Source: Gracilinanus agilis (lineage: Eukaryota). From it: a DNA stretch of 64,000 bases. The notes under the pieces were generated by a model, which was not told the origin of the DNA, made no database searches, and saw nothing but the letters and a program-made list of their open reading frames with translations. Positions within the stretch are counted from its first letter, which is position 1, and every line of letters begins with the position of its first letter. Positions 24,193 through 55,854 of this stretch are shown in pieces. The stretch lies in NCBI RefSeq assembly GCF_016433145.1, contig NC_058131.1, forward strand, positions 700,224,319 through 700,288,318, written 5' to 3'. The position numbers and the translations under genes are program-made.

Positions 24193-25310
24193 GTGAGTCT
24201 GCGCTTCCCTTTTATCCAAAGAAGTATCTGGAGAGAGAGTGGGGTTGGGGGGTGCTTGTGTGGGTGGGTCTCTTATCACGGAGGCTCCTCCACGAGGCTC
24301 GGCCTGATGGCCTCGCTTGATCATGGCAGTCAGGCCCCGGCCGGCATCCCTTATCTCCCGACAGAACAGAACCAGGAAAGGCCCGATTTGTTCTGGTCCT
24401 CCTTTCCCCAGTGCCTAGCACAATACCTAGAACCCGTTTTTGTGGACTGATGGATGTTTGCCAGTATTTTATAAAAATGACCGCGGCTCCTGATGCTGCC
24501 ATTATTTCATCTAGGACAGTCTGTGGGCTGATTGTTCTTGGAGTTGTTTAACTGCATCCCTCCAGAATACAATGTACGTATTCCATCAAGGAGGGACTCG
24601 CACAAGACTAATCAAGACTCGCTAACTAAGACGATTTGGGACCTTTCTTTGTTTCGCGAGTGGCCACAAGGCCAGTAGATTCCTGATGTAGGCAGGCCAG
24701 TTCTTGGAGAGCGGAGTAGGCCTTCCTGGCCCAGAAGGACTCGCCGCAGCTGCTCTGCAATGGCATGACCCTCGTACATCCTGCCTTGGGGCTTAATAAG
24801 GGTCTGATTCTGGGCGAGCAGCTGGGCTGTTTGGCCCTCAGTTTCCTCTTCGGTAAAACGAGAGGGTCGGCCTAGGCCCTTCTGTGGTTCCTTTCGGCTC
24901 TAACGTGGTGATTCTATGAACCAGTTTTCTCCTAATACTTTGTTTCTATAAGACATTTCAATATGAAGAAAAAAACAATGTGTTCTAAGCCAAAAATGAA
25001 AAGATTTCTGGAAGAAATGGCACTGGCCATTTATAAAAGGGCTTTTTCAATCCTTAAAATGCTATGTAAATGCTAGTTAATTGTGAATTTAAAACAATAT
25101 CAGCCACTATAACAGTATAGAAAGCGAAAAAGTGTTTTCTATCTGAAAATGAACTTCTGCCCAGATTTACTTTTTAAGTGTATATCAAATTTAAAACAAT
25201 ATTACCAAATTGCCTCCTTGTCCGGGCCCTTTTCTGACCTTGGTAAATATCTAAATCCGTGTCACTGCCTGTCCTGAACGCTGATGTTCCGTTTCTCTTT
25301 GTGCCTGAAG

Positions 25311-25440
25311 GGCTCAGTTGGAAACAGATTTGAAGATTGAAAAGGAATGGAGGCAGACTTTGCAAGAGGACCTCCAGAAGGAGAACGACGCACTCTCTCA
25401 CCTGAGACATGAGACACAACAAATCATTAGTCTTAAAAAA
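25311..25440 (+). CDS. RUFY2: RUFY2 exon ([43 protein letters not shown])
   Basis: tgaag acceptor, AAA|gtacat donor, 130 bp. Confidence 0.95.
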
Positions 25441-25732
25441 GTACATCGTGGTAAAACATTAAAAGTTTATTTCAGATTTTTAGTGTCTTTTCAAGAAAGA
25501 ATCAGAGATGGTCATTTTCATAGCCAGGCGTGGTAACAAAATGTTTTGGGCATAGGAAGTGTTAACTTGTGTAAATATTTTGCTCAGTTTAATAGAGGTC
25601 TGCCAGTAGGTAGCCTATCTCTGTTATAGAGTAGCAATAAATCTACGGGAAAATCATTTTTTACTTAAACGCTTAGTGTGTTGTTGAGTAATGTATAGAC
25701 AATGCAATATTTTTTTTTCATTGTTTCTGAAG

Positions 25733-25827: not shown

Positions 25828-27654
25828 GTAACTTTTCTTTTTTATTTTCTGTAAAATGGTTCCCTTTTAAAAGTCTCTACCTGGTCAGAACCAACAAATA
25901 GGTATCTAAACCTTTTAAACAAATTGTAAAACCTGCAAGTGAACCAATGAATGGGGCTTTTAGGAGGAGGAAAGCTGGAAAGCAGGCAGGCCCCGAGCAA
26001 GCTCCACTGGGCTTCTCCCCCGAGCCCAGACGGGGTGTCGGAGCTGGTCTCGGGTCCATATTTTAGACATTTTCTTCTTTGCTTCAGCCAGTCACTAGCA
26101 TGTCCGAAGTGCCTGCTGGGTCCAAAGAAGGCAGCCGGCCAGCAGCCCCAGCTCTGGGAGTCTGGTGGGGAGGCCACGTGGCGGCTCACGGGAAGGGAGT
26201 CGGCACAGGGAGGCAGAGAGGGGGAGGGGACAGCCGGGGAGCGGGAGGCAGTGGGGAGGCCGACGGCTCCGTGCCAGGAACCGTGAGGAGGCGAGTGCGC
26301 GGAGGGCCGGCCCAGCACAAGACGGAGGAAGCCGGGACAGGTAGGAGGAGCTCAGCCATGAAGGCCTTCGAAGGCCGGCAGGAGGTTCCGTTCCATCTGG
26401 CAAGTCCTGGGGAGCCCCTGGGGTCTCTGGCCTGGCCAGAGCGGGGAGGACGGACCGGGAACGCGCCAGGGCGAGGACGGAGCCCAGGAAGGTGGTGCGC
26501 CTGGACGGCCGAGTCGGAGGAGAGTTGGGGGGACGCTCGGAGCCCCTGTCGAAGCTAACATGAGTCCAGATCTCAGGCCGGGCTGTTTAAGAGGCCCAGA
26601 GGTCACGGCTGGACACGGGCATGGGCGGCGGTTTGGCCTCACGAGGCCACTCCCGGCTAGCTAGCGGCTGGGGTCTGGGAGAGGAGCCCAAGCAGGAACG
26701 GTCAGAGGGTGAGGAGGCCATCAGGACAGCTGAGGGGTCAAGAGGGAGGAGGCCTTGGAGTCTGGCGACTCCGACATGGCGGCCGTCTGTGGAGGAAGCC
26801 TTTTGGGCTGAACGGGGAGGCCGGAAGCTGGACTTGGTGTTCGGGAAGCCCTGCAGACAGTCTCCCGAGAAGGGCCGAGCAGCGGGGAAGAATCCAGGGC
26901 ACGGGCTGGGGGCCAGCCGCCTGCCAGGGGCCCGGGTGGGCGTCTCTTCATGTGAAATGGAGAGGAGGAAGCCAGTGTAGAAGGCGTCCGGCTCCCATCT
27001 TCCAGGAGGGTGTGCCGGCTCTGATGGAGAGGCTGGGGAGGCTGGAGGCCAGAGCGGGGCTGGAAAAACCCCTGGCGGGGGCATGAAAAGGCTGTAGGGA
27101 GGGCCCTGTCGGCACCCCGAAGGGGAGGGCAGAGGGTGGTTCAGGGCAGCGCTGGGGGCTGTGAGGCAGAGGACGAGGCCGGGAGGCCTCCAGATTCTGG
27201 CCCAATAGAGGCATTTTGGAGTTCACGACACGTAGGTGGCACGCTGGAGGGTGGTGGCCAGGCCCAGGGTCTGAGCAGGGCTGGGCGGGGGGCCGCCAGG
27301 AGCCTGTTAGAGGGAGTCGAGGGAGGGTCGGCCAGAGCAGGAGCCGGAGAGCCACATCCTGGTCGGGGGTTAGAGGAGAGTCTGTCTGTCTGGCACAGCA
27401 CAGCTTTCCTCCAGTTCTGAGATTCTGTCATTGTGATGACCTGGAAGACGGGAGGAGCCCCGAGACGCGGCACACAGATGCCTGGCTGAGCCCAGCCGCT
27501 CCCGGGAGGCGCCTCGCCTCTGGCTGGTCCCCGGACCTCCCCGGCCTCCTTTTCTTCTAAAATGTGGGATCGGCGTAGAGGCCCAGAGACTTCCTGGGGG
27601 GTCACTGCCAGGAGGTATCTGAAGTCAATTTTGGCTGCTTTCTCTTCTTTTTAG

Positions 27655-27703
27655 ATCGAAACTTAAAATAGAAGATATAAAAGAGGCCAACAAAGCTTTA
27701 CAG
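27655..27703 (+). CDS. RUFY2: RUFY2 exon (SKLKIEDIKEANKALQ)
   Basis: ttttag acceptor, CAG|gttggt donor, 49 bp. Confidence 0.94.
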
Positions 27704-27744
27704 GTTGGTAGACATTTTTTCCCTCCAGATATTGAATATGTATT

Positions 27745-27745
<1 letters not shown>

Positions 27746-27770
<25 letters not shown>
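27746..27770. repeat. (TG)n microsatellite
   Basis: Direct reading. Confidence 0.9.
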
Positions 27771-27775
<5 letters not shown>

Positions 27776-28349
27776 CCCCGTTCTTTGTGCAGGGCGCCCC
27801 GGCAGCCCCGGCCCTCGGGCCCTCAGCGAGTCCCTGCGCCGCCGTCTGCTCGCTCTTGCGTGTGTCCGAGCTCGGTACGGCCCGGCCCGGCCCGCACTAA
27901 CTAGGCCTCACGAGGCCCGCCGACCCCGACGGGGCAGGGCTGGCCTGCGTCCTCCCTTGTCGCGGCGGGCACTTTCCAAACCCCCAACCAGGACGTGCCC
28001 GAGACCGGGAGCAGCGGGCCAGCCCGGAGCCACGGCTTTGCCTTTAACTTGGAGCCCCCGAGCTAGCTTTCGGGCGTCGTGCCCGGCCCTGCCCAAGAGA
28101 GCCTCGTCTGCCTGCCTGCCAGCACGGTCAGGACGGCCTTTTGGAAATGATGATGGGATAAAAAATAGAAGGAATCAGAGAAACCTTTGAAACAAAGCGC
28201 TCTCCTCCTCCCACTGAAGCGAATGCTCAGTATTTGGGGTGAGAAAGGATCGCTTCTTCCCTAAGATGGTGGCGACCCCGAGGATCCCCGCTCAAGGCCA
28301 GCCCAGCCATGGGAGAAAGGGAGCGACCAGGGTAAAGGTTTGGGTTTTG

Positions 28350-28545
28350 GGGGGCAGCTGGGTAGCTCAGTGGAGTGAGTCAGGCCTAGAGATGGGAGGT
28401 TCTAGGTTCAAATCCGGCCTCAGCCACTTCCCAGCTGTGTGACCCTGGGCAAGTCACTTGACCCCCATTGCCCACCCTTTCCACTCTTCCACCTATGAGA
28501 AAATACACAGTATTCATTCTAAGATGGAAGGGAAGGGTTTAAAAT
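28350..28545 (+). mobile_element. SINE1_Mdo-like SINE; a MAR1-type 3' part follows at ~28740-28910
   Basis: gggggcagctgggtagctcagtgg head and gggttt A-rich tail. Confidence 0.85.
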
Positions 28546-29291: not shown

Positions 29292-29369
29292 GGTCAAGTT
29301 TGGTTGAAAGATGAAGAAGCCACCCACTGTAAGTTGTGTGAAAAGGAATTCTCACTTTCTAAGAGAAAG
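29292..29369 (+). CDS. RUFY2: RUFY2 exon, start of FYVE domain ([26 protein letters not shown])
   Basis: ctag acceptor, AAG|gtaagc donor; WxxD FYVE motif. Confidence 0.96.
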
Positions 29370-29465
29370 GTAAGCTGGGAGGGGGAAACCCGATTGTGCT
29401 GGGCAGGAGGCCAGGAGGAAGTCTCGGGGCGGCTCCATAAGCGCCTTCTTCTCTCCTTTAAAAAG

Positions 29466-29609
29466 CACCACTGTCGGAACTGTGGGGAGATCTTCTGTAA
29501 CGCCTGCTCGGACAACGAGCTGCCTTTGCCTTCGTCCCCCAAGCCTGTCCGAGTGTGCGATTCCTGCCACGCTCTGCTGATCCAGAGATGCTCGTCTACC
29601 GTGCCCTGA
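29466..29609 (+). CDS. RUFY2: RUFY2 last coding exon ([47 protein letters not shown]-stop)
   Basis: HHCRxCG and RVC FYVE motifs, TGA at 29607-29609. Visible exons plus the inferred 31 gap bases total 1643 nt, consistent with a ~606-aa protein missing 178 nt of upstream CDS. Confidence 0.96.
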
Positions 29610-40650: not shown

Positions 40651-43099
40651 ATCTAGCTCAATCTCAATTCTGGGAATCAAAATGGCTTGCTGAAGGAAAC
40701 CAAAATAACAATTAGGAAAGGTAGATTTGAACCCAGATCCTTCAAACTCCAAATTTAATGCATGTTCACTGCACAAACATATCCATCAGAAAAAAAGAAA
40801 TTCTCTGCAGCATTTGGAAAAGACTGCTAGAGAATACAGAAATAAAGTTAGTTCCGTCTCTAAAATCCAACTTTTCCTCATTACATATCCCATATGATGG
40901 TTTTAAAAGCTTTTCTTGGAAACTATCTAGAGTAGACCACAAACCAGAACATTACAGAGCCAAGTAACTGATTAAAAATACTTATTTATGAGCCCTCTAG
41001 CATTCTTTTTTGTTTAAATTTTTCTTTAAGCTGGTCTCTGACAAGAAACTAAATAAGTACAAAACTAAAGGGCTGAAGGTGAAAAGTTAAGGCCAAGGAG
41101 GAAAATGTGGCTCTCAAAGAGTTATCTCTGAAGCTAACCTAGATGATTTCATCTTACTCTGTATTACCTTCAATGTGTAGAGATCTAACACGGAAGGGTA
41201 GAGGTATCACTAGCTGGTGTAACAACAGAACTTGAGACTACCCCAAAGAAATGGTAAAGAAGATCAAGTCCCGAAACTTTTCTGGAGATATCAAAGCAAA
41301 GTCAAAAAGATTTCTTAAATCTGTATTAGTTTCCCTTAAGCTACTACCTATGGGGGAAAACAGCTTAATAAAAGCAAAAGAAGCACAAAAAGTTCCAAAA
41401 TCCAAAATTAAAGGAGCAACTGTGCTTGAGCTCTGGTACAGAAAAGACAATCTCAATACCGGACTCCTGTATGTGCAGTTAACTCCTGACTACAGGCAGT
41501 GAGAAAAGAATGCTCCCTTCCTCTTTTTGGGGTTGGGGGAAGAGATGTGAAGATATCCAGAGTACCTGAATACTAAATAAAATACCTACATTAATTTAGC
41601 AGAAATTTTCAACACAAACTAGTTTAAACTATTTTTAAAAATCTCACAATTCTGGAGCTTTCCTTTTGCTTTCAAATTTTAAAATAAAGACCAGTCTTAC
41701 ATCAAGTATGGAACAGAAAACAAACAGACCCAAGTTTGTTTTTTATAAATTATTAGCCTTAGCCTTTATATTTGGTGATAGATTCCTTGGACAGCAAAGA
41801 AATGTTCTGATGACTAGAATTCTAGTTGCAAATTACAATCAGACAGAAATAAAACTGGAAAAGCTAAGCCTGCTACTTTCAACTTCTTCATTCATTAGCA
41901 CACTTCTACTTTATATTAAAAATGTGATATTTTCTATGTAGAATACTTGCGAACATCAACTAACAGAAATTTAAGAAATCAGAAATACCTTAAAAATAAA
42001 CACAGATGCTTTTTTGTTTGGAAGAAATGGTGACATAACTCTACTTTAAAAAAAAGACATTCTATGATTGTCCCAAGCATCCAGGACGTTAAAGAAACCT
42101 GTAATTCAAGGATCAACTCCTATTGGAATTAATTTACTTACAAGCTTGACAACATTATCCACCTAAGGGAGTATAATTAAGTAAAATCCTTCTAAAGCAG
42201 TGCATATAAACACACAACTAGCTGTTAAGTAACTGGATAGTACTGATTGCAGTTTGCAATCTTCTCCACAGATACACCAGTTGTATGCATTTTTATTATT
42301 AAAATAACCAGTCCTAAGCTTTAAAAGCAATGCTGGAATTCATCAAGGAAATTTCCACAACTAATGGAAAGGAACAGCAATTAGATAGATGACCACTGGG
42401 TTGAGATAAAGAGAAGAGATAAGATACTGAGATATACAAATATGGGGATTATTAAATTAAGCCATAATTACCAGGTCAGACACTCAGCCTTTTTTCATTC
42501 TGGGGCATTTTGCTTTTAAAAGCAAAGTTTCTAGTTAAATATTTTTCATTACATTGTTGGCACTTTTAGACACTTTCCATACTGAGAATATATAAGGGTG
42601 CATGCCCTGTAGTTAAAAAATTCTGAAGCATACATTTTCTGGATGGAACCTTTTATTTTCTCAAAAGCCTTTTGTGCTGTTTTTGTAAACTACGCTTTTG
42701 CCCTTTCCCCTCCCTCAATAAAAAAATCAGAAACCTCCTGATTTGTGCGGTACTCCCAAAAGCTTCTTTACTTGGCCAGCTTCTTTCCTGAGCTCAATTA
42801 TCTAATGTGTTGAGGGCCGGGGGGAGGTGGGTGCGCCAGTGACATTCAAACAATCTCTGTTAACTGGGTCCAACGCTTGGAAAGAGATGGGGTGCATAAA
42901 GCCCTCTCAAAACATCTCCCTAGTCGCGCCTCACATAGTTACCGTTACTAGACCTTTCTCTTTACCCAGAAAAGTCCTTTCGGTCCCAGCCCAGCCCTCG
43001 AGAAACTCGACCAAACACTTCAAACATCAATAGTTCGATCCAACCGGTCTTCCCTCGGCGTGTAAGAACAGAACCAGCCGGCTTCCCGCTAGCTGGGGC

Positions 43100-44450
43100 T
43101 TATTCCCCACCTCCCTCTACCCTCCACGAGCACAACTTCCCCCAACAAAGCGGTCCACGAGCAGTCCAGTCCCGGCCCAGCCCGTCCCCGCAGGCCGCCC
43201 CATCGGTTACTTTCCCCAAGGCCCTGGGGGGCGGGACCACAAAGGAGGCCGCCCGCTCCTTTGTCCCCGCCGCGGTGCTCCCGGTCTCCCTCCCTCAGCT
43301 CCCCCGCCTGGCCCGGGATGAGAAGAACCAGGGGGCGGCGCCGGGGCCCGCGCGGACTCCACGTCCCTCCGCTGTCCGGCAGCCCTCAGCCCAGGGAGGA
43401 CCGAGAAGCCGCGGACCCCGAAGCGGTGGAGGCCGGAGGGGCGGGCCGGGCCGGGGCGCGCCAACGCGCTCAAAATGGCGGCGGCGGCAGAGCGCACTCC
43501 AGACACGGGCCCGGCTCCCCGGCCCAGTCGCCCGCCACCTCCAGGCCTAGCTCCCCCACGTCCGTCCGCCCGTCCGTCCTGCTCCTGGCCTGGCCCCCGG
43601 ACGCCCCGTCGTACCTCAGACACCCGGGCTAGCGGGCGGGCGGGCTCCGGCGGCAGGAGGCGCGAGGTCAGGGGCGGCCGCTAGTCTCGCGCTGCGTGCG
43701 CCCTCCACAAACGGTCCCTTCAACCGTCTCCCGGCGGCGGCAGAGGGTAGCTGCGCAGCTGAGCCGGCGGCGGCGGCAGGAAGGCGAGAAGGGGGCTGGG
43801 GAAGCGGTACCAACGAAACCCCCCGGGCGTCGCGCGGATCTCGCGGGAACTCGGGGCACAAGCTCGCGAAGTGAGCTGCGCGGGATAGGGCTGGCCTCCG
43901 TGCGCGTGCGCCGCCGCGCCGCCGTCTGTTGAGTCGCGCTGCGCGGCGCGAGGGGGCGGGGTTTCTGTCACACTCTCTCTCTCTCTGCCCTGGGCGGCCG
44001 CGGTCCTCCAATCTAGGCCGCTTGGGGGCGGGATCATCGCACCTGCATGGCGGGGACCGGAACTGTTGGTTACCTGCGAGGGCTGAGATTCCTTAGCGCT
44101 CTCGGAATTGCATTCCTCTGTCTTACGGAGAGTACTCGGGGGTCTGGAAGAACCGTGCAGCTTCCGAAGGAGGAGGGACGCAGAAGGTGACAGGCTTTGG
44201 CGACTGGCAGATATCAGCGGGCCAGAAGTGGCCACCCGCGTTCTCCGTAGGGGGACAACGAGGCCGTGCCGGGAGCTTCCGTGGGCTGGGAAGCGAGCGT
44301 GGGAGTGCGGGCGGCAGGGACTGTGCCTTTGCGTCCTTCGCAGGCGGCCAATAAATATTTGGTGGAAGAAGTTTGAACGTCCGCCCTTTTTTCTCGCCCT
44401 TTGCTAGCGTGCGGCTCTAGCAGCTTTGTGGAAGTGACTTTTTTTCTTAT
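43100..44450. promoter_or_regulatory. CpG island / promoter of HNRNPH3, with YY1-type motif AAAATGGCGGC (43472-43482) and GC box GGGGCGGGG (43953-43961)
   Basis: Very high GC and CpG density against an AT-rich background; motifs read directly from sequence. Confidence 0.85.
43615..43800 (-). other. HNRNPH3: Probable non-coding exon 1 of HNRNPH3
   Basis: GAG|gtacga donor at 43614-43613 inside the CpG island. Sequence resembles the recalled human 5' UTR (gagacggttg...accgtt). 5' boundary approximate. Confidence 0.55.
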
Positions 44451-45066
44451 TGGAGAAATGGAAGTAATGCCGCTTGCAGAGTCTATTATGTCAGACGCGT
44501 TGACTTCTTGGCACTGTTTCCTGGCCTCGTTTATAACCCGACTGAATGGAAAGGGCTGCATGAAAAGAGTGAGGTACTAAGTAGGGGCCATTATTCACTA
44601 AAAAAGTGAGACCGCCTTTAATCAGTCTTTCCAACACACATACTTGTGGCCTGGCACGTGGCGCTAGTCCAAGATCGAGGATTTCTGTGAGATTATCTGT
44701 CTGGAATTGTTTCCAAAGAGACGGAAGCCCTCCCGAGCCCTCCCGGCTGCTTACCGGATCTTTTCCCCCTTTGTTTCTCCTTCCATCTCTATGGTACCCT
44801 TGTATTAGCAGAAAGACCAGAGGGGGCCCTGTAGGGAATCCTGTTAGAGGCCTGAAGAGAGAGAGAAGGGCGCAGAGATGTACCCACACCACCACCCAGA
44901 GGTGGAAGAAAGAAAGACACGGGGGAGAAAAGTACCTTAGGAGGAAGAAAATGCCAAATATTTGCGTGAAAATTCAGTGTGAGGGTAAAAGGAGAAAAAA
45001 CTGAGTCTATCTATATGATTCTGTGTCCCTCTTCCCCGCATAAAAATTACTTTCAAATAAACTGGA

Positions 45067-48600: not shown

Positions 48601-50350
48601 CATTTTATAGGAATTTCCTCTCAAGTAAAAAATAGTCTGGGCATTTTTGAAGCATAAATGAGATAATGCATTACCTGATTTTGTTGCACAGGAGACCTTT
48701 TAAAATTATGCTCTCCATTGCTAAATTACATTTGAAATTTCTACAGAAGGATCTTAGAACAGTGATTTCTGGACTTTCCAAACAAGTTTATTAAAATGAT
48801 CAAATGATTTGCAACAGGAAGAAAAGGGTATTTTAAAATATAGTGGATAGAAAATATTAATAAGCAAATTCCACAAAAAGTTCAGATTCATTCTTAAAAT
48901 TAGTTTTTATATTTCTATCATCTTTCCTTGAACATTTTTATATGGACCCCCAAGCATCAATGATCTTCACTCACTATATATGTGAAACCTATGGCATAAG
49001 TGCCAAAGATGGCAAGCAGAGCCCTCTCTATGGGTACCTGTATCCTCCCCCAGTTCTTTACTAGAAAGGCCAAGGGACTTGGCAGAGCTGCTCCCTTCCT
49101 GCTCTCTCCACCATGCCTGATGTTTTTTCACATTTCACAGCCCCCCTGCCCAGCAGCCAATGGGAGCACACAGGGTAAGGTGGGCGACTCACAGGCTGAA
49201 GAGCTGGTGGGGAGCAGAGTGCTGGGCCATCCCCCGCCCCCTCTCTACCTTACTGAAGACATTCTTCACTTCACCCGCCCCTCTGTCCAGCAGCCCAATG
49301 GGAGTGCTTCCTCCATCCCCTGAGTGGGGTAAGGGGGGGCCTGACCCATCACTCAGCCTGGGGGGGATGGGGCCCAGCACTCCATCTCTAACAGGTTTGT
49401 CAGCACTGAACTATAGTATGTACCTCGTCCTCCCTTATGTAACAATGAACAGAAAAATAAATATAAAGCGGTAACAGGAGAAATCTTGTTCCATTACTCT
49501 AATTATTCAGACCTTGGTTATCTTACTCAGACTAGTGCAATAACTTCTTCACTGATCACCCTACCTCAAGCATCTTTCTACTCCAATATTTCATGCTAAA
49601 AAGATATTCCTAAAATATAGGTCTGACCATACCATTCCCCTGCTCAAGTTCTCTGAATGAGGGCAGCTAGATGGCTCAAATGAATAGAGAACCAGGCCTA
49701 GGGATGGGAGGCTACGGGTTCAAATGTGGCCTCAGAAATTTCCTAGCTGTGTGGTCCTGTACAAGTCACTTAACTCCCATTGAGTAGGCCTTACTACTCT
49801 CTCAGCCTCTGAACATCCAATGCATATATTGATTCTAAAATGGAAGGTAAGGATTTTTTTTTTTTTTGATGTTCCCTGGACCGTTCTATGGTTAGCATAA
49901 TACTTAGCATAGTGTGCTTTTAAAAAATGCTTCTTCAAAAATTTATTCTAGGATAACACAAATGCCTGTTTGGCATTTAAAGCCCTTTTTGGCTGGTTCT
50001 AGACTACCTTTCTGGGATTACTGCCTGCTGTTCTTCACACATTCTCTAATCTGGCCTAGTTTACCTGTGTTTCCTCTATACCCCATCTTCTATCTCCATG
50101 CTTTTGCCAAGGCTGTTCCCTAAGAGCTGAGCTTCCTTCAAAGCTAGGCTCAAGGTCTACCTCCTATATGAAACCCATCATAATGCACCCCAATTGCTAG
50201 TGTCTGTACCCCCAGAAATAACTTTGAGCATATTTTGCACTTACTTAGTGTTGCACCTCAATAGACTAAGCTCCCCTGGATTGTTTTTATCTTTGTATCC
50301 CCAGAACTTGGATGGTGCTTGGCATATAGCAGGTACTTAATGCTCCTTCA
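45690..50350. mobile_element. Cluster of old L2/MIR fragments with SINEs at ~46345-46545 and ~49660-49860
   Basis: L2 3'-end motifs (cacagtgcctgacacatag, cttaacaaatgcttgctgattga, gcttggcatatagcaggtacttaa). Boundaries approximate. Confidence 0.55.
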
Positions 50351-51230
50351 ACAAGGACAGGGAATACCATAGCAACAATGTAATTTTAATTTTTATTTGG
50401 GACAAGGATAAACAGTACTTTTAGGGGCAGATATATAGCATGATGGTTAGTGATGGGCTTGAAATCAGGAAGTCTTCTCTTCATGAATCCCAAGTCACTT
50501 AACCCTGTTTGCCTAAAAAAAAAAATAAAATTAAAAAACCCAATTTTTTATTAGATAAAACTAATAAGCAATAATATTTAAGCAGTATAAAAAATTAGCA
50601 ATTTGTTTAATTTGACATAGGCTTGCAACAATAATTAAACAAATAATTAAATTGTTTAGTAAATGATTATTTTTATGTAGGACAAGGATAAACAATAAAG
50701 TAACACAACTTAATCCTAGCCAGGGTTCTTTGTGAATATTGCCTTCTCCCATTCCTTTTGCCCTTGGAGAAGTCTTGAACCCCAATGTGGTTTGAATTCC
50801 TTTCTATCTAGTATGATTTGGTGATTATTGTTCTACAGGTAGAGTAGAGGAATGGAAACTTCAGCAAAGGCAGCTCCTGCACCTTAGCTCAGGCTGGGTC
50901 TGTGGCTGTTAGGCTTTCTCCTTCCCTGGCTCAACCTGACCTAGGATCTAACTGCAGCTTGCCCAACAGCCCCAAACTCTTGCTGCTACTTGTTGTTGGT
51001 CTCCAGTTCACAGAATCCACCACCACTAGCACCCTATTATCAAAGGCACAGCAGTGAGTTGATTAATGCAACCTGGGAGGACCTAAGCATACAGCCAGGA
51101 ATCCTCTTAGCCTCTACTGTGGAATAGAAGCCAATCTGTATCTAGCTTCTGAGCTGGTCAGATCAGGGCCTGGAAGATCAAGCACAATCTAACACTCAGT
51201 CTTAAATGGAGAGAGCTGACACTGGGGCAG

Positions 51231-52640
51231 TCATCTAGTGAACAGCACCACCAGCTCATAGTGCTGGGTATGTGGAAACATGTCTACAGGCACAGCTTGT
51301 CTCAGGACAAAAGGCTCGCCCAGGAGGTCCTTGCCAGGGTCTGGGGGGCAGCACAACTCAAGGAAGTTTCTTTTGGCCTTTCCCTCTGGGTAGCAGGAAA
51401 CAAACAGCAGCGTCCTAATGGCTGTGCAATTTCTAATGGCCCGAACCACCTGACAGTTCAATCCAGTCCGGGATGGATCCACCATAACCACTAGGGACTG
51501 ACCAGCCTCCTGCGACTTTAAAAGCTGGGGCACTACATTCTCCACATGGTCAGCATGGAATTCCCAGTTGGTGATTCCATTGAAAGCTGCAGTCCATTTG
51601 GCATCCTCTACAGCCTGACCCGCTAGCCCGGTGCTTAGGACCTGGGATGTGTGCGGAGCCAGGGAGAGGCTGGTGGCTCCAGTTCCTTGGCTAAGGTCAA
51701 GGAGGAGGGTATTGGGGTCCATCCCGCTTAGTTCTCCCACCACCCGGTAAAGAACCTCCACAGCAGCTGAATTAATTTGGAAAAAGGCTCCTGGTGAGAT
51801 GCGGAATTTAAAGCCTGGCAAGTCTTCAAAAAGGTGAGAGTCCCCTGCGAGGAGCTGGTAGCAAGGCTGCTGCTGGTCGCCTGCCCTTTCTTGGAAGTAG
51901 AGGGAGGCCAATTCACAGACAGCCCCGGGCCCTCGGGTGAAGAATTCCTGGAGTTCCTCCTTCGGCTCACGCAGCTCCTCCGGACTCAGCCCCTGCGGTT
52001 CGAAGGAGACGATGGCCATCGTGTGGCCCCGGCTGGTGCTCCTGACCGTGAGCTCGTGCCAGTGTCCGCTGGCATCCGAGTCCAAGTAGGGGTCGAGAGG
52101 GGTCTGTTCAAGAAAAGCCTGGTAGCAGCGGGCCACGCGTTGATGCGCGTCCGGGATGTGCTTCAAGTGCCCGGGCCCCACGCATACCGGGTGCTGCTCG
52201 CGGCCGGAGCCTAGCACGTAGCCCACTGTCCGGGGCCGGCCGTCAGGGCCCTGTCGGACGGCGAAATTACACTTGTTCCGATAGCCGTGGAGGACGGGAG
52301 ACGGCCGGAAGGGCTGCAGGCGTGAGCAAAGCGCGCCGGCCTCACCATCTGGGCTCCCGAGCAGACGCAAGCGACCCTCGAGCCACTGCAGGAGCCCGCG
52401 CAGCGCGTCCGTCTTCACCCGGAGCTGCTGCTCGTAATCCAGCCGCCACAACGGTGTCACCAGGTCCGCTAGCCGCTCGGGCCATGAGCCGGGCTCCGGA
52501 CTCCACTCTTCTGCCGCCGGTGCCGCCGCAGCCTTTTCCGGGCACGCGGAGCCCAGCCAGGCCCGCGGGGTACCCCAGGGGGGAGGCCCTCTGCGGGACA
52601 GCAGCGCCACTCCGGGAAGGCAGGAGCCGAGGCGCCTCAT
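51231..52640 (-). CDS. TRMT2B: Intronless TRMT2B-like tRNA/rRNA (uracil-5)-methyltransferase homolog, 469 aa, probable retrogene
   Basis: One uninterrupted ORF colinear with recalled TRMT2B (ERLADLVTPLWRL, GYRNK, AFFQIN, FVSC, VDMFPHTQHYELVVLFTR). The ORF-track start at 52802 is TTG; the first ATG (gccggggccATGA) is at 52640. Confidence 0.9.
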   Translation of the reverse strand: MRRLGSCLPGVALLSRRGPPPWGTPRAWLGSACPEKAAAAPAAEEWSPEPGSWPERLADLVTPLWRLDYEQQLRVKTDALRGLLQWLEGRLRLLGSPDGEAGALCSRLQPFRPSPVLHGYRNKCNFAVRQGPDGRPRTVGYVLGSGREQHPVCVGPGHLKHIPDAHQRVARCYQAFLEQTPLDPYLDSDASGHWHELTVRSTSRGHTMAIVSFEPQGLSPEELREPKEELQEFFTRGPGAVCELASLYFQERAGDQQQPCYQLLAGDSHLFEDLPGFKFRISPGAFFQINSAAVEVLYRVVGELSGMDPNTLLLDLSQGTGATSLSLAPHTSQVLSTGLAGQAVEDAKWTAAFNGITNWEFHADHVENVVPQLLKSQEAGQSLVVMVDPSRTGLNCQVVRAIRNCTAIRTLLFVSCYPEGKAKRNFLELCCPPDPGKDLLGEPFVLRQAVPVDMFPHTQHYELVVLFTR

Positions 52641-52649
52641 GGCCCCGGC

Positions 52650-52910
52650 ACAACACGTGGTTAGGAGTGAGAACCCAAGCCCGGGCCGGGAAAAGCCCCG
52701 GGATGACCGGCGCAAAATTGTCTCTTCCTCGCTTCTCCGCCCACAAGTCCCTGCGCTCTTTCCACCAATCAGAACCTCTTTCACACGTTCTATACCAATC
52801 AAAGGTCAGCTCCTGGCAGCAGCGCCCTCTGGGAAATCAAGGTCTTACTCTCCTCCAATCAACGCTAGCCTTTGGACCCTTCCTTTCACGGGAAATGTAG
52901 TCTTCTTCCC
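52650..52910. promoter_or_regulatory. Promoter-like motif cluster upstream of the TRMT2B-like ORF: CACGTG (52654-52659), three CCAATC boxes (52765, 52795, 52855), ACTACAnnTCCC on - strand (52890-52901)
   Basis: Motifs read directly; adjoins a CpG-rich stretch ~52000-52750. Confidence 0.65.
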
Positions 52911-53657
52911 TTCTGGCTACCTTGAGTAGCCACGGCTTCCCCTGTCTCCTTCCCGCTTAGCAAAAAAAGAGAAAGGGCCCAGACCCGAGTAATGGGAAGG
53001 GAAGACTTTTGTTGTCCGTAGAGAGAATTGTCAGGGAAGCCTATCAGAATATTAGTACTGGTTTGTTACTTCGCACCCACAAAGCACAGTCCTTTGCACA
53101 TAGAAGGCACTTAATTAATGTTTCATTCACGCATTCCTTCTTTAAGGCTTGTTCAGGAAATTCTCAGCTTTGGTCTCAGCTAACTGTGCAAAGAGAACCT
53201 CCAGGACCGTGACGTGGCAGGAAAATAAGAATCAAACAAGCAGCGACCTTCAAAACCAAGTCACTAGTCAGGAGAAAGTCCAAGCCCCGCCTCCCCACCC
53301 CGCAGGGGAGCGATGTCCTCCAGAAAACGGCCATAGGGTAAGGCCGCCCATCAACCGCCCCCTCTGACCTCGGAGGTTACACGGTCTTAGCTACCTCATT
53401 AACTCGCTGGTTAACCAGGTAGCTCAAACTTCAGGTGGTCGGTACTTGGAGGAAAACTGTAATGCAATGAAGCAAGACTGCCCGATTTGAAAAGAAAGTC
53501 AGTTTCGAAATTAAAAAGAAAACTTTCCCAGATGGTTAAAGTAAGCGACTATTTATTACCCTTCCATTGATGGGGCAAAGGTCCCTTTGTTGCAATGAGT
53601 GACTCATTAACATTTTGATTATATAACCCAGCGACTTAAAATCGCCTCATTCTGCAG

Positions 53658-53777
53658 TTTGGAGAGATTTTAGGAAACCTTATGCTAAGGAAGATGCAGC
53701 TCCCTGTTTTTGTAGTGGATGCTTTTACAGCGGAGTCATTCCGGGGGAACCCTGCCGCAGTTTGTCTCCTAGAAAAT
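53658..53777 (+). CDS. PBLD: PBLD first coding exon; CDS 53694-53777 (MQLPVFVVDAFTAESFRGNPAAVCLLEN), PhzF-like epimerase family
   Basis: tctgcag acceptor at 53657, ATG at 53694, AAT|gtaagt donor; DAFT and GNPAAV PhzF-family motifs. The next exon was not found before 64000. Confidence 0.88.
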
Positions 53778-53984
53778 GTAAGTTATATTTTAAATATTTT
53801 TATGGAACATTTTTTCCCACCACATCTCTAAAAATATTCCCGCCTGTCTCTTGCCTGTTTTTGTGCTCATGTGCGAATTTTTAGTGTCTGAATGCTGGTT
53901 TTGTTTATAAAAAATGCTCAGAGCTGGGTTAGGTCCAAGGACAATGACAAGAACAAGTGTATGTGAAGGAGAACTATAACTGTG

Positions 53985-54046
53985 CCCATCAGATGGGGAA
54001 TGGCTGAACAAATTGTGACCTCTGAACATAATGGAACATTCCTGCA

Positions 54047-54103
<57 letters not shown>

Positions 54104-54200
54104 AATATGAAGAATTCTGAGAAACTTGGGAAGACTTGTATGAACTGATGTAAAGTGAAAATGAGAAGAAATAGAAAAACAATTGGCGCAATGAAGATGA
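53985..54200 (+). mobile_element. L1 3' fragment containing a (CA)n microsatellite (~54046-54094)
   Basis: gatggggaatggctgaacaaattgtg L1 ORF2-end motif; AC repeat read directly. Confidence 0.75.
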
Positions 54201-55854
54201 AACTATAAAAGGATAACTTTGACAAACCTCAGGGTTCTGAATCAGGACTGTATAACACTAGAACTGTAAGTAACTTCAGAAACCAACCTCCTTATTTTCC
54301 AGATGAAGAAACCCATGCCCAGGGAGATTAAAACACTTGCCCAAAGTCACACAGATAAGAAATGAGAGGTGAAATTTGAATATAGTTTCTTCAACTCCTA
54401 AATCTATGTTTTCTCCCTCCACTGGACCACACAGATTCCTTTCAGAGGTCTAATGATGAAGCCTGCCTCCTGACCGTTAGAGACTGAGAGAACTGGAATG
54501 AACTAGAGAAGTGAATGATGACAATTTTTCAGAAGTGACCTATGTGTTGATTTGCTTTGCTTGACTACCTTGGATAAAGTACTGGGCTTGGAATCAGGAA
54601 GACCTGAGTTCAAATCTAGCCCCAGGCATTTATTTGCTATGTCTCCTGAAGCAAGTTTGTCAAGCCCTAGGGATACAAGTACAAAAACAGATACAATTCC
54701 TACTACTTAGGCAGTTTATATTCCAAGAGGGGTAGGATTGGTGGCCAGAGACGGAATTGATTTGTTCCCGGAATTCCTAGGGTTAGTGAGTGGAGCCACA
54801 AGGAAATTGTTAATGCAACCCCAGGCCCAGGGACCTTTATCCTCTCAAGTAAAGCTTTTGGATACCGAGAGACCAATTGCGCAATGGAATCCTGGATCCT
54901 GTTCTCATCTTAATAGCTCACTTATTATTCAGCCTTGGTGGGGTCATTCTGCTTCATCAAATGTTGGTAACGGTTTTTGTCAAGCTCTAGGGAGTCTGAT
55001 ATCAGATAAAGAAAGCTAGACTAAAGGAGTCAAGAAACCTACATACATATCCCTGTTCTGGCACTAACAGTAAGTTGCTCCACCATTTTGATTCTGAGTT
55101 TCCTCATGTGTTACATAAAGGCGAGGGGTGATAACATGTTAGATTAGATGACCTCTAAAGTCTCTTCCAGATCTCAGATTTTATGATGCTATAAATAACT
55201 AATAATTAGAAGATAGGAAGGTAATAATAGGTTATAGAAAGTAAACTTTCTTTTTAATAAGGAAATTCCCTAGGATGATTGTACAACAGTTAATATTTTA
55301 TATTAACTTTAAGCTTTGCAAAGCATTTACAAATACATTAATCCTCACAATAACCCTAGGAGGTAGGTGCTATTATCTTCATTTTACAGTTGAGGAAAAC
55401 TGAGGCAGACAATGGTTCAGTGACTTGCTCAATGTCATACTTCTAGAAGTGTTTCAGGCCAGATTTTAACTTGGGTTTTCCTGACTCTAGGTCCATCACT
55501 CTAGCCATTACACCACCTAGAAAAGGGCTTTGATACAATAGAGAATATGGTACTTATAATTTCCCAAAGAATTTCTGAACAAATCGGGCTGACTAAAAGT
55601 GGATGGGGGAAAGAAAGGTAGTCATGATTTCCTATTTACTTTATGAGGACATTCAAAAGATGGTGGAAAGGCCAGTTATCAATAACAAAGGGTCAATGAC
55701 TCTGAGTTCAGGTAGAGATAACCCCAGCCTAGATGATCTCTTAAAATCTCCGAAAACCTAAAGATTCTGTGAGTTATGAAATGACAGGATTCCCTCAATT
55801 AGGGTACCTCTCCCATCTTGTTCAAGGGCCTTAATTTAGATTCCCAGCCTCCAC

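Follow-up and report, generated by a model that had tools for sequence, protein, structure and literature searches.

TRMT2B is X-linked in eutherians. In vertebrates, its product is the mitochondrial methyltransferase responsible for m5U54 in tRNA and m5U429 in 12S rRNA (PMC7237155). The TRMT2B proteins of Bovinae and rat are predicted to be inactive and are conserved nonetheless, TrmA and Trm2 act as chaperones, and whether selection targets m5U or the protein itself has been left open in the TRMT2B literature (PMC7237155). Retrogenes that use the bidirectional CpG promoter of a neighbour have been described in 11 human and 12 mouse cases, arranged head-to-head within 2 kb (Carelli et al. 2016, PMC4772013), and among opossum retrogenes X-derived parents occur in excess (PMC2276528).

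Here we analysed a window of 64,000 nucleotides from Gracilinanus agilis (contig NC_058131.1), in which an earlier note had singled out an intact TRMT2B copy and read it as a marsupial-specific retrogene kept by selection, either as a testis backup of an X-linked parent or as a full replacement of it. Our results uphold the marsupial-specific, selected retrogene and depart from that reading on the X-linked parent and on full replacement. We consider it likely that the locus is a functional retrogene, copied from TRMT2B mRNA in the marsupial stem, inserted between PBLD and HNRNPH3 and retained as an additional paralogue. The gene model is not new, being present in NCBI and UniProt, and the exact protein is already deposited in NCBI and UniRef. 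A literature search on TRMT2B in marsupials or TRMT2B retrocopies found nothing relevant.

The single-exon gene, its transcript and its neighbours

The 469 codons without stops or frameshifts that had first drawn attention were recovered as a minus-strand frame at exactly the same coordinates (Table 1), and no N-run of the assembly touches them. The start codon, an ATG at 52640, lies in the context gccATGa, with a purine at -3 that we grade as adequate where the note had called it good. By its sequence, the product is assigned to the TRMT2B-type m5U RNA methyltransferase family: PF05958 (tRNA_U5-meth_tr) matches residues 277-467 with 38.3 bits (cut-off 23), phmmer retrieves RlmCD (5e-22), RumA (1e-11) and TrmA (4e-4), and identity reaches 93% with a Monodelphis 'TRMT2B-like' protein and 51% with human TRMT2B isoform 3, in agreement with the heavy divergence already remarked on. 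An AlphaFold (AF2) model of the protein (pLDDT 70.9, pTM 0.70) has the predicted two-domain fold, with a central and a class I methyltransferase domain, and Foldseek aligns it with RlmCD at TM 0.65-0.69 and with TrmA and RumA at TM 0.57-0.71. Residues 1-34 contain five Arg and neither Asp nor Glu, the first acidic residue being E35, which agrees with the Arg-rich start free of acidic residues described earlier, and the protein is probably mitochondrial by virtue of a retained basic N-terminal presequence like that of the parent. Mechanically, the reading frame continues 5' to a TTG at 52802 with zero in-frame ATG upstream. This 523-residue form was ruled out as the true protein, given that the RNA 5' ends lie 3' of the TTG and that orthologues begin at the ATG, the extended Dromiciops annotation excepted.

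Table 1. Coordinates of the features in the window, with strand and supporting details.
Feature	Position	Strand	Details
TRMT2B retrogene CDS	51231..52640	-	single exon, 469 codons + TGA; ORF/translation, PF05958, Monodelphis match
Retrogene 5' UTR	52641..52721	-	about 70-80 nt; estimated from the relative's RNA contig ends (52707, 52721)
Retrogene 3' UTR	50650..51230	-	at least about 550-580 nt; RNA contigs reach 50681 (X11) and 50650 (X18)
Retrogene core promoter (putative)	52738..52860	-	three inverted CCAAT boxes (GATTGG at 52765-52770, 52795-52800, 52855-52860) and a GGGCGG box (52738-52743)
CpG island	52000..52750	.	over 5' third of CDS and 5' UTR; GC 0.68-0.70, CpG observed/expected 0.76-1.03
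PBLD non-coding exon 1	52737..53540	+	divergent from retrogene; GTAAGC donor from 53541
PBLD exon 2, start codon	53657..53777	+	ATG at 53682 or 53694; PF02567 positions 1-21, E = 6e-5; acceptor cag| at 53656, donor |gtaagt at 53778
Second CpG island (probable HNRNPH3 promoter)	43000..44500	-	GC 0.58-0.75, CpG observed/expected 0.84-1.0; retrogene located between it and PBLD
Later SINE-like insertion	50382..50697 (SINE 50418-50661)	.	at 3' UTR end; repeat family D2, T-run and SINE-like core

Evidence for transcription comes from the orthologue in a related opossum, whose RNA shows the retrogene as an unspliced mRNA of ~2 kb between silent flanks. The relative's RNA contigs, of 2046 nt (50681-52707, run X11) and 1744 nt (50995-52721, X18), run collinear across the window without any splice joint in the retrogene, and the X18 depth is zero upstream of 52721. 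Along with the 1410-bp called gene range of the Monodelphis orthologue and the 18-21 kb span of the multi-exon marsupial paralogue, these contigs support the absence of introns. The two genes occupy records of different size, at 760.8 (retrogene) versus 538.3 Mb (parent) in Monodelphis, 267.6 versus 568.7 Mb in Trichosurus and 725 versus 801 Mb in the mouse opossum. The retrogene is thus an intronless copy of an intron-bearing gene, located at another locus on a different chromosome-sized record.

The retrogene sits between HNRNPH3 and PBLD, head-to-head with the latter. The presence of PBLD, HNRNPH3-like and RUFY2-like genes in the window, together with the placement of the protein on a 725-Mb chromosome record, agrees with the autosomal block proposed earlier. 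The minus-strand exons at 34.0-36.6 kb, of the hnRNP-H-type Gly/Tyr-rich and RRM-like kinds, are those that we take to be HNRNPH3. An Rfam scan of the window returned zero hits. For PBLD, RNA contigs X11 (52737-53540) and X9 (52965-53540) join position 53540 to exon 2, a joint that the DNA run lacks; since the PBLD contigs are spliced, the libraries are truly RNA. The main PBLD start is probably near 52965, the 5' ends of the two transcripts lie roughly 15-260 bp apart, and in Monodelphis PBLD is likewise head-to-head, 1,038 bp from the retrogene ATG.

Three of the 24 GATTGG matches of the window fall within the 96 nt just upstream of the transcript 5' end, and the promoter boxes would be candidate binding sites for NF-Y and Sp1. 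Over the 3' half of the CDS the CpG observed/expected ratio is down to 0.23-0.45, and past the CDS it drops to 0. At least 23 RNA runs from nine studies of the related opossum hold the maximal word share for the retrogene, which, combined with a CpG-island/CCAAT promoter, suggests broad expression. Among three runs compared, one held PBLD without the retrogene and one the retrogene without PBLD, and with the genes uncoupled in this way the 'shared' promoter may be two adjacent promoters.

At the 3' side, the hexamers CATAAA (about 50683) and AATAAA (about 50395) lie on either side of a SINE, inside which the relative's reads are marked as repeat (50511-50543). The RNA contig end at 50650 may come from this repeat and not from a poly(A) site, the DNA contig breaking there too. 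A 36-nt direct repeat, 83% identical, brackets the SINE (50382-50417 and 50662-50697); this is the sole clear direct duplication near the retrogene, and it belongs to the later insertion. A search around the gene for a poly(A) remnant or target-site duplication left by the original insertion found neither, as would be expected of an event more than about 80 million years old.

Orthologues, age and constraint

Intact orthologues are found in five further marsupials, namely Monodelphis, Vombatus, Trichosurus, Dromiciops and Sarcophilus (469-473 residues, one annotated at 544), so that the copy is not a young pseudogene; with Gracilinanus included, the frame is open in six species from four marsupial orders. 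No database entry for an orthologue was seen for koala, tammar, sugar glider, dunnart, bilby or antechinus, making losses in single lineages possible. One Sarcophilus model is labelled 'LOW QUALITY', and the NCBI annotation of Vombatus is without the retrogene protein.

In the tree, the retrogene clade and the canonical marsupial TRMT2B clade each have support of 100/100, as does the node that joins them. Since the retrogene clade is the 100/100 sister of multi-exon marsupial TRMT2B, the copying event is placed in the marsupial stem, and marsupials have retained the gene for roughly 80 million years. The shared marsupial stem measures 0.24 and the separate stems 0.39 and 0.33, making the marsupial stem about seven times the eutherian one (0.57-0.63 versus 0.08). 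Crown paths are 0.19 for the parent and 0.29-0.32 for the retrocopy, and Gracilinanus and Monodelphis differ at 27 of 484 residues in the parent and 35 of 469 in the retrocopy.

Judged from these sequences, the retrogene CDS is under purifying selection, as an intact frame is not credible under neutrality: a neutral model in which all amino acid changes are free predicts about 15 stop codons in the crown clade, with a probability of about 3e-7 for none, and the same lenient model predicts 9-29 frameshifts besides. A rough dN/dS of 0.10-0.17, for which the relative was taken as Monodelphis domestica and CDS differences were estimated from contig totals, is not near 1; taking the divergence of the 3' UTR (about 8%) as neutral instead gives a less marked ratio of about 0.42. 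The differences from Monodelphis cluster in residues 1-49 (10/49 versus 25/420, P = 0.0015). Orthologues in four orders, an intact frame, a dN/dS well below 1 and transcription in a relative all speak for the marsupial-specific retrogene under selection that had been proposed.

The cofactor pocket and possible roles of the two paralogues

Motif states were compared in about 120 TRMT2B proteins, of which about 105 are non-marsupial. The nucleophilic Cys416 and the general-base Glu462, which aligns with RlmCD E443, show no variation in an alignment of 17 sequences or among the full set of 21 marsupial sequences from both paralogues. In these 21 sequences F286 and Y298 are also invariant and D388 is present (RlmCD F281, Y293 and D381, respectively). 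The retrogene protein preserves the motif I G-x-G (G319-T-G321). At the positions by which canonical SAM binding is judged, the retrogene has SQ for the CC before G-x-G, and G338 in place of the motif II acid. RlmCD E333, which hydrogen-bonds the SAH ribose (PMC5614603), aligns gap-free to G338, a position occupied by E in all non-marsupials, by G in 8/8 retrogene sequences and by G, A or S in canonical marsupial sequences. Motif I reads CC outside marsupials and SQ or SH within them. As the pocket changes are common to both marsupial paralogues, they are older than the copying event; gene conversion was ruled out as the source of the shared states, the paralogues being only about 55% identical and on different chromosomes.

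From these features, we propose that the mRNA of multi-exon TRMT2B would have been reverse-transcribed after the placental split and before the divergence of American and Australian marsupials, and inserted head-to-head with PBLD. Its transcription would proceed from a CCAAT/GC-box CpG-island promoter shared with, or abutting, that of PBLD (promoter piggy-backing, with use of the PBLD promoter presumed) and yield an unspliced mRNA of about 2 kb. Its protein retains the basic presequence, the m5U-methyltransferase fold and the Cys416-Glu462 pair, together with a SAM pocket remodelled before copying (motif II Glu to Gly338, motif I CC to SQ). We infer that methyltransferase activity persists despite the altered cofactor pocket, while the missing SAM-ribose Glu argues against normal catalysis in the predicted retrogene protein.

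This last point opens the way to a different account, possible though not one we favour, in which SAM binding was lost before the duplication and both paralogues were kept as methylation-dead binders or chaperones of mitochondrial tRNA and 12S rRNA. It would explain why the SAH-ribose Glu, present in the approximately 105 non-marsupial proteins, is replaced in marsupials, why generic SAM-methyltransferase Pfam families match the eutherian protein and neither marsupial paralogue at threshold, and why the marsupial stem is so long, and it has precedents in the inactive yet conserved TRMT2B of Bovinae and rat and in the chaperone roles of TrmA and Trm2 (PMC7237155). Against it, the catalytic pair and the pocket residues F286, Y298 and D388 have persisted in 21 marsupial sequences over about 80 million years, in contrast to the TRMT2Bs known to be dead, from which the Cys is missing; motif I G-x-G is also kept, and a change of Cys to Gln or His adjacent to the glycine loop combined with Glu to Gly could be compensated remodelling.

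That the retrocopy has become the working mitochondrial m5U methyltransferase, with the multi-exon parent drifting to another role, appears doubtful. By Pfam score the retrocopy does look more enzyme-like than the parent, with 38 bits for PF05958 (35.6 for eutherian TRMT2B) versus 16.4 for canonical Monodelphis TRMT2B, which is below the cut-off of 23, and no Pfam match at all for canonical Vombatus TRMT2B. In addition, it keeps the Arg of motif IV DPSR and the C-terminal FPHT.H.E, where the parent has DPSQ, FPHS.Q.E and a variable G, A or S at position 338. However, an intact parent was found in every marsupial examined, at least eight in number (Antechinus being represented by a 100-residue partial); it still has its catalytic Cys and Glu, and its rate of evolution is slightly below that of the copy by both crown path and residue differences, which runs counter to the full replacement suggested earlier. 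The parent also appears to be expressed, because contig pieces cross-matching 51277-51368 in 3/3 RNA runs are probably its mRNA. A broader conjecture, which we rate as improbable, is that the marsupial ancestor rebuilt or lost its SAM pocket and kept two paralogues for about 80 million years or more, either with substrates split between mt-tRNA U54 and 12S rRNA U429 or with both acting as methylation-independent RNA chaperones, the retrocopy being the more enzyme-like in either case.

Parental linkage and comparison with known systems

Multi-exon TRMT2B lies on records of 478-801 Mb in nine species: Monodelphis, Gracilinanus, Trichosurus, Notamacropus, Phascolarctos, Sminthopsis, Sarcophilus, Antechinus and Macrotis. 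To our knowledge, these sizes are far above that of any marsupial X, and the X-linked parent assumed by the earlier note is not what the records indicate. Among the neighbours listed for the parent, Pfam records are absent apart from an odd RPL36-type model. With the parent kept on such very large autosome-sized records, the retrogene represents an additional long-lived paralogue and neither an X backup nor a replacement.

An out-of-X origin, in which an X-linked parent was shut down during male meiosis and its autosomal copy was retained to stand in for it in the testis, is accordingly unlikely. Its appeal comes from the X-linkage of eutherian TRMT2B and from the many birds that carry the gene on records of about 20-25 Mb, which we equate with the chromosome 4A block, the counterpart of the conserved X region; in that case, TRMT2B was probably on the proto-X of the therian ancestor. 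The excess of X-derived parents among opossum retrogenes points the same way, retroposition may have come before or after the parent's move to an autosome within the stem, and the parent may have been X-linked at the time of copying. Yet a parent already autosomal before marsupials radiated, as the nine species indicate, has no present need of meiotic backup, and the copy is conserved even so; the promoter type and breadth of RNA runs suggest broad rather than testis-specific expression. A processed pseudogene open by chance, or an annotation or assembly artefact, is extremely improbable and already contradicted by the data: the missing insertion marks and the annotation flaws in Vombatus and Sarcophilus are set against a frame open in six species of four orders, a probability of at most about 3e-7 even with the most permissive neutral model, assembly of the region in contigs of both DNA and RNA from a separate species, and constraint that is uneven along the protein.

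As a functional retrogene, the locus would add one more well-dated, order-spanning entry to marsupial retrogenes, and a clean example of a copy set directly against a neighbour's CpG promoter. It also calls for caution in 'out-of-X' counts, since X-linkage in placentals cannot be assumed for marsupials, where the intron-bearing gene and the retrocopy are both on autosome-sized records. The main lead is biochemical: both marsupial paralogues are without the otherwise invariant SAM-ribose Glu and have kept the catalytic dyad, making marsupials a natural experiment on whether selection keeps mitochondrial m5U or only the TRMT2B protein.

Compared with eutherian and other vertebrate TRMT2B, the retrogene protein aligns end-to-end at 51-57% identity, belongs to the same family and fold, has a homologous basic presequence, and shares with them the catalytic Cys and Glu, the F/Y pair of the cofactor pocket and FPHT.H.E. 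It differs in being intronless, marsupial-only and located at the PBLD/HNRNPH3 locus, in having a shorter linker after the presequence, and in its motifs II (Gly for Glu), I (SQ for CC) and IV (DPSR for NP[AS]R). With multi-exon marsupial TRMT2B (Monodelphis XP_007488881, Gracilinanus XP_044525358), it forms sister clades that share pocket changes and a similar crown rate; identity is only 53-58%, and the parent has introns over 18-21 kb on another giant chromosome, DPSQ and FPHS.Q.E motifs and a sub-threshold PF05958 match. The marsupial proteins resemble TRMT2B of Bovinae and rat (PMC7237155) in being conserved despite a damaged active or cofactor site, but in Bovinae the nucleophilic Cys is reported to be lost, whereas marsupials keep Cys and Glu and lack the SAM-ribose Glu, in both paralogues together. 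Like the retrogenes of Carelli et al. 2016 (PMC4772013), the copy is head-to-head with its neighbour and has a CpG island with CCAAT and GC boxes. Unlike them, it shows no visible expression coupling to PBLD in three runs, and its CpG island lies mostly over its own 5' CDS, so that the island may have been carried in, or may have evolved, with the copy.

An intronless TRMT2B gene shared among marsupials

The intronless TRMT2B copy on the minus strand of the window comprises 469 sense codons and a TGA stop without interruption, and its first 34 residues carry five arginines and no acidic residue; in both respects the earlier note's description was accurate. Upstream of the ATG at 52640, the frame stays open as far as a TTG at 52802, with no in-frame ATG in between, and the 5' ends of RNA from a related opossum lie downstream of this TTG. 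The encoded protein matches the Pfam tRNA uracil-5 methyltransferase family (PF05958) with 38.3 bits (cut-off 23), as well as the solved m5U methyltransferases RlmCD (5e-22), RumA (1e-11) and TrmA (4e-4). Its AlphaFold model (pLDDT 70.9, pTM 0.70, residues 1-62 disordered) superposes on these three structures with TM values of 0.57-0.71.

The orthologue survey recovered 'TRMT2B-like' proteins with open frames in five other marsupials, which are the closest relatives of the copy: Monodelphis domestica (469 aa, 93% identity), Vombatus (82%), Dromiciops (80%), Sarcophilus (80%) and Trichosurus. The window's own copy protein has entries in both NCBI and UniRef and is placed on a chromosome record of 725 Mb; the gene model is already listed by NCBI and UniProt as 'TRMT2B-like'. 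A second set of marsupial proteins of ~490 aa, the ordinary TRMT2B, is just 53-58% identical to the copy, no nearer to it than placental, bird or turtle TRMT2B, and occurs in Monodelphis, Gracilinanus, Vombatus, Phascolarctos, Trichosurus, Notamacropus, Petaurus, Sminthopsis, Sarcophilus and Macrotis. The Monodelphis orthologue of the copy is a single-exon gene of 1410 bp; the ordinary gene, hereafter the parent, spans 21.4 kb in Monodelphis, 18.1 kb in Vombatus, 18.0 kb in Trichosurus and 19.1 kb in Notamacropus.

A maximum likelihood tree was built from 26 TRMT2B proteins, with a caecilian as the root. It groups six intronless copies in one clade (100/100) and seven intron-bearing marsupial genes in another (100/100); the two are sisters (100/100) within the therians, next to the placental clade. 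Hence the copy was derived, after the split from placentals, from the gene carried by the marsupial lineage itself; together with the difference in gene structure, this bears out the proposal that it is a retrogene. Since the copy is found in Didelphimorphia, Microbiotheria, Dasyuromorphia and Diprotodontia, it is older than the crown marsupial divergence, which dates to ~80 My. Searches of the database turned up no retro orthologue from koala, tammar, sugar glider, dunnart, bilby or antechinus, which could reflect losses or annotation gaps. Small in-frame indels separate the two Sarcophilus retrogene models, P0004 and P0124, whose C-termini differ as well; one of the two is labelled LOW QUALITY. 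Among the papers searched, none dealt with TRMT2B and retrocopies or, meaningfully, with TRMT2B and marsupials.

Promoter, neighbourhood and transcription

The 5' end of the copy abuts the start region of PBLD, and the Monodelphis PBLD also lies head-to-head with the copy, 1,038 bp from its ATG. Three of the 24 GATTGG matches in the whole 64 kb are the copy's CCAAT boxes. The hnRNP-H-type gene on the other side is presumably HNRNPH3, which we take to be a divergent neighbour of PBLD in human; the copy is therefore located between PBLD and HNRNPH3. Between the two RUFY2-like exons, the GC-rich block contains a (CA)n run near 27.7 kb, and both of its strands carry long open frames; it is either an unannotated promoter or a CpG island within an intron.

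Features of the window around the TRMT2B copy
Feature	Position	Strand	Remarks
RUFY2-like exon	25309-25533		
GC-rich block, 2.5 kb	26000-28500		GC 0.58-0.68, CpG observed/expected 0.44-0.79
RUFY2-type FYVE exon	29292-29606	plus	PF01363, 1e-18
hnRNP-H-type exons	34.0-36.6 kb	minus	downstream of copy
CpG island of hnRNP-H-type gene	43.0-44.5 kb		
Direct repeat with SINE (whole block)	50382-50697		repeat of 36 nt, 83% identical
SINE-like insertion	50418-50661		T-run and typical marsupial SINE core
TRMT2B copy, open reading frame	51231-52640	minus	ATG at 52640
CpG island	52000-52750		GC 0.68-0.70, observed/expected 0.76-1.03
Three inverted CCAAT boxes	52765, 52795, 52855		GATTGG; immediately 5' of copy transcript start
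GGGCGG box			directly 5' of copy transcript start
PBLD exon 1, non-coding	to 53540	opposite to copy	
PBLD exon 2	53657-53777		contains ATG; PF02567 match
(CA/TG)n microsatellite	53967-54107		directly past PBLD exon 2; repeat-flagged reads 54040-54104

Contigs from three RNA runs (X9, X11 and X18) and one DNA run of the related opossum, presumably Monodelphis, were mapped to 49200-55100. A single 2046-nt contig covers 50681-52707 in X11, and contigs cover 50650-50991 and 50995-52721 in X18; as they have no internal joints, the copy mRNA is unspliced, and its start lies ~70-80 nt 5' of the ATG. PBLD contigs from RNA jump 53541-53656, a joint that is not in the DNA run, which identifies true RNA libraries with silent flanks. 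Despite the common start region, the two genes are uncoupled: X18 contains the copy only, with zero depth across 52746-53927, X11 contains both, and X9 contains PBLD only (27.7x on that side), the copy being silent save for a short stretch of cross-matching sequence in bin 51170-51366. Among the matches listed, at least 23 RNA runs from 9 studies had the maximal share of conserved words.

Extra contig pieces in all three RNA runs cross-match 51277-51368 alone, which codes for the most conserved C-terminal motif (a 621-nt contig of depth 21.8 in X18; depth 12.6 in X9). These pieces are probably parent TRMT2B mRNA, in which case all three runs show expression of the parent. At the 3' end, all contigs of the related opossum, the DNA contig included, break at 50650-50681, at the SINE edge. 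An AATAAA-like hexamer lies inside the duplicated target of the SINE, which may have interrupted the original poly(A) site when it inserted. Head-to-head piggy-backing of retrocopies on a bidirectional promoter, and their broad expression from CpG-island promoters, have been documented (PMC4772013), and a conserved retrogene using its neighbour's CpG promoter is a well-known kind of thing.

Constraint on the copy and chromosomal location of the parent

Three indirect arguments agree and point to purifying selection, in line with the earlier note's view that the copy is kept by selection. First, under a lenient null in which all amino-acid changes in the crown retro clade are taken as neutral, ~15 stop codons and 9-29 frameshifts are expected; none occurs across six species (P ~3e-7 from stops alone). 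Second, the 35 of 469 residues that differ between the window and Monodelphis are ~4x denser in the first 49 residues (10/49) than in the folded part (25/420; Fisher P = 0.0015). Third, RNA and DNA contigs of the related opossum differ from the window at ~8% of positions, corresponding to ~113 CDS differences, and non-synonymous changes are needed for just 36; the resulting dN/dS of ~0.10-0.17 is a rough figure from contig differences that presumes Monodelphis, and with 3' UTR divergence (~7.8%) as the neutral yardstick the ratio becomes ~0.42 instead, also roughly. Stem branch lengths are 0.24 for the shared marsupial branch, 0.39 for the copy, 0.33 for the parent and 0.08 for placentals. Within crown marsupials, the opossum-to-Australian path is ~0.29-0.32 for the copy and ~0.19 for the parent (27 of 484 aligned residues differ between Gracilinanus and Monodelphis), and both evolve at ordinary rates. 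The copy is thus a genuine, old, selectively maintained TRMT2B retrogene, with transcription seen in the related opossum.

The earlier note further proposed that the copy had escaped from the X, as a testis backup or full replacement of an X-linked parent. The parent, however, is intact, which contradicts replacement, and in nine living marsupials it lies on records of 478-801 Mb: Monodelphis 538, Gracilinanus 801, Trichosurus 569, Notamacropus 478, Phascolarctos 730, Sminthopsis 757, Sarcophilus 716 or 746, Antechinus 727 (partial) and Macrotis 705 Mb. Records of this length match the largest autosomes and exceed a marsupial X by about an order of magnitude. X linkage of the parent is therefore ruled out for American and Australian marsupials alike, which leaves X escape unsupported and gives no basis for the copy now standing in for a silenced X gene. 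TRMT2B is X-linked in placentals, and bird TRMT2B lies on records of ~20-25 Mb, presumably the block of chromosome 4A that is homologous to the conserved region of the X. In that case TRMT2B was probably on the therian proto-X and moved in the marsupial stem, either before or after the retroposition; the copy may have been X-derived at birth.

Targeting and cofactor pocket of the marsupial paralogues

The N-terminus of the copy aligns with parent and placental TRMT2B in a common pattern, ...AL.S[RK]..P.PW......LG[ST]AC. Human TRMT2B is mitochondrial by experiment (PMC7237155), and by this homology mitochondrial import of the copy is likely. Functionally important residues of RlmCD are F281, Y293, E333 (SAH ribose), D381 and E443 (general base) (PMC5614603). 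Placed through the gap-free portion of the alignment, F281, Y293, D381 and E443 are kept in the copy as F286, Y298, D388 and E462, and the nucleophile is C416; the sole exception is the SAH-ribose binder E333, which corresponds to G338. Among ~120 TRMT2B sequences, position 338 is Glu in all non-marsupials, Gly in 8 of 8 retro sequences, and Gly, Ala or Ser in intron-bearing marsupial genes. Motif I has likewise changed: 'CC-G-T-G' has given way to 'SQ-G-T-G' (copy) and 'SH-G-T-G' (parent). As these pocket changes are common to both paralogues, they arose on the shared marsupial stem, before the copy, and they are the part of this analysis that deserves a bench test.

The parent has changed further, with Arg to Gln in motif IV and FPHT.H.E to FPHS.Q.E. 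Its PF05958 score is below threshold (16.4 bits or no match), against 38 for the copy and 35.6 for the placental protein, the only one of the three to match generic SAM-methyltransferase families. Canonical marsupial TRMT2B proteins (P0029, P0005 and others) look more degenerate than the retrocopy.

For marsupial TRMT2B, sequence conservation slightly favours a remodelled pocket that still works over a dead enzyme, because the Cys, the Glu, D388, F286 and Y298 have stayed fixed in two paralogues for ~80 My. TRMT2B of Bovinae and rat looks catalytically dead yet is conserved, and a chaperone role has been proposed for it (Powell and Minczuk, PMC7237155). In contrast to those proteins, the marsupial ones strictly retain the catalytic dyad and have lost the cofactor contact.
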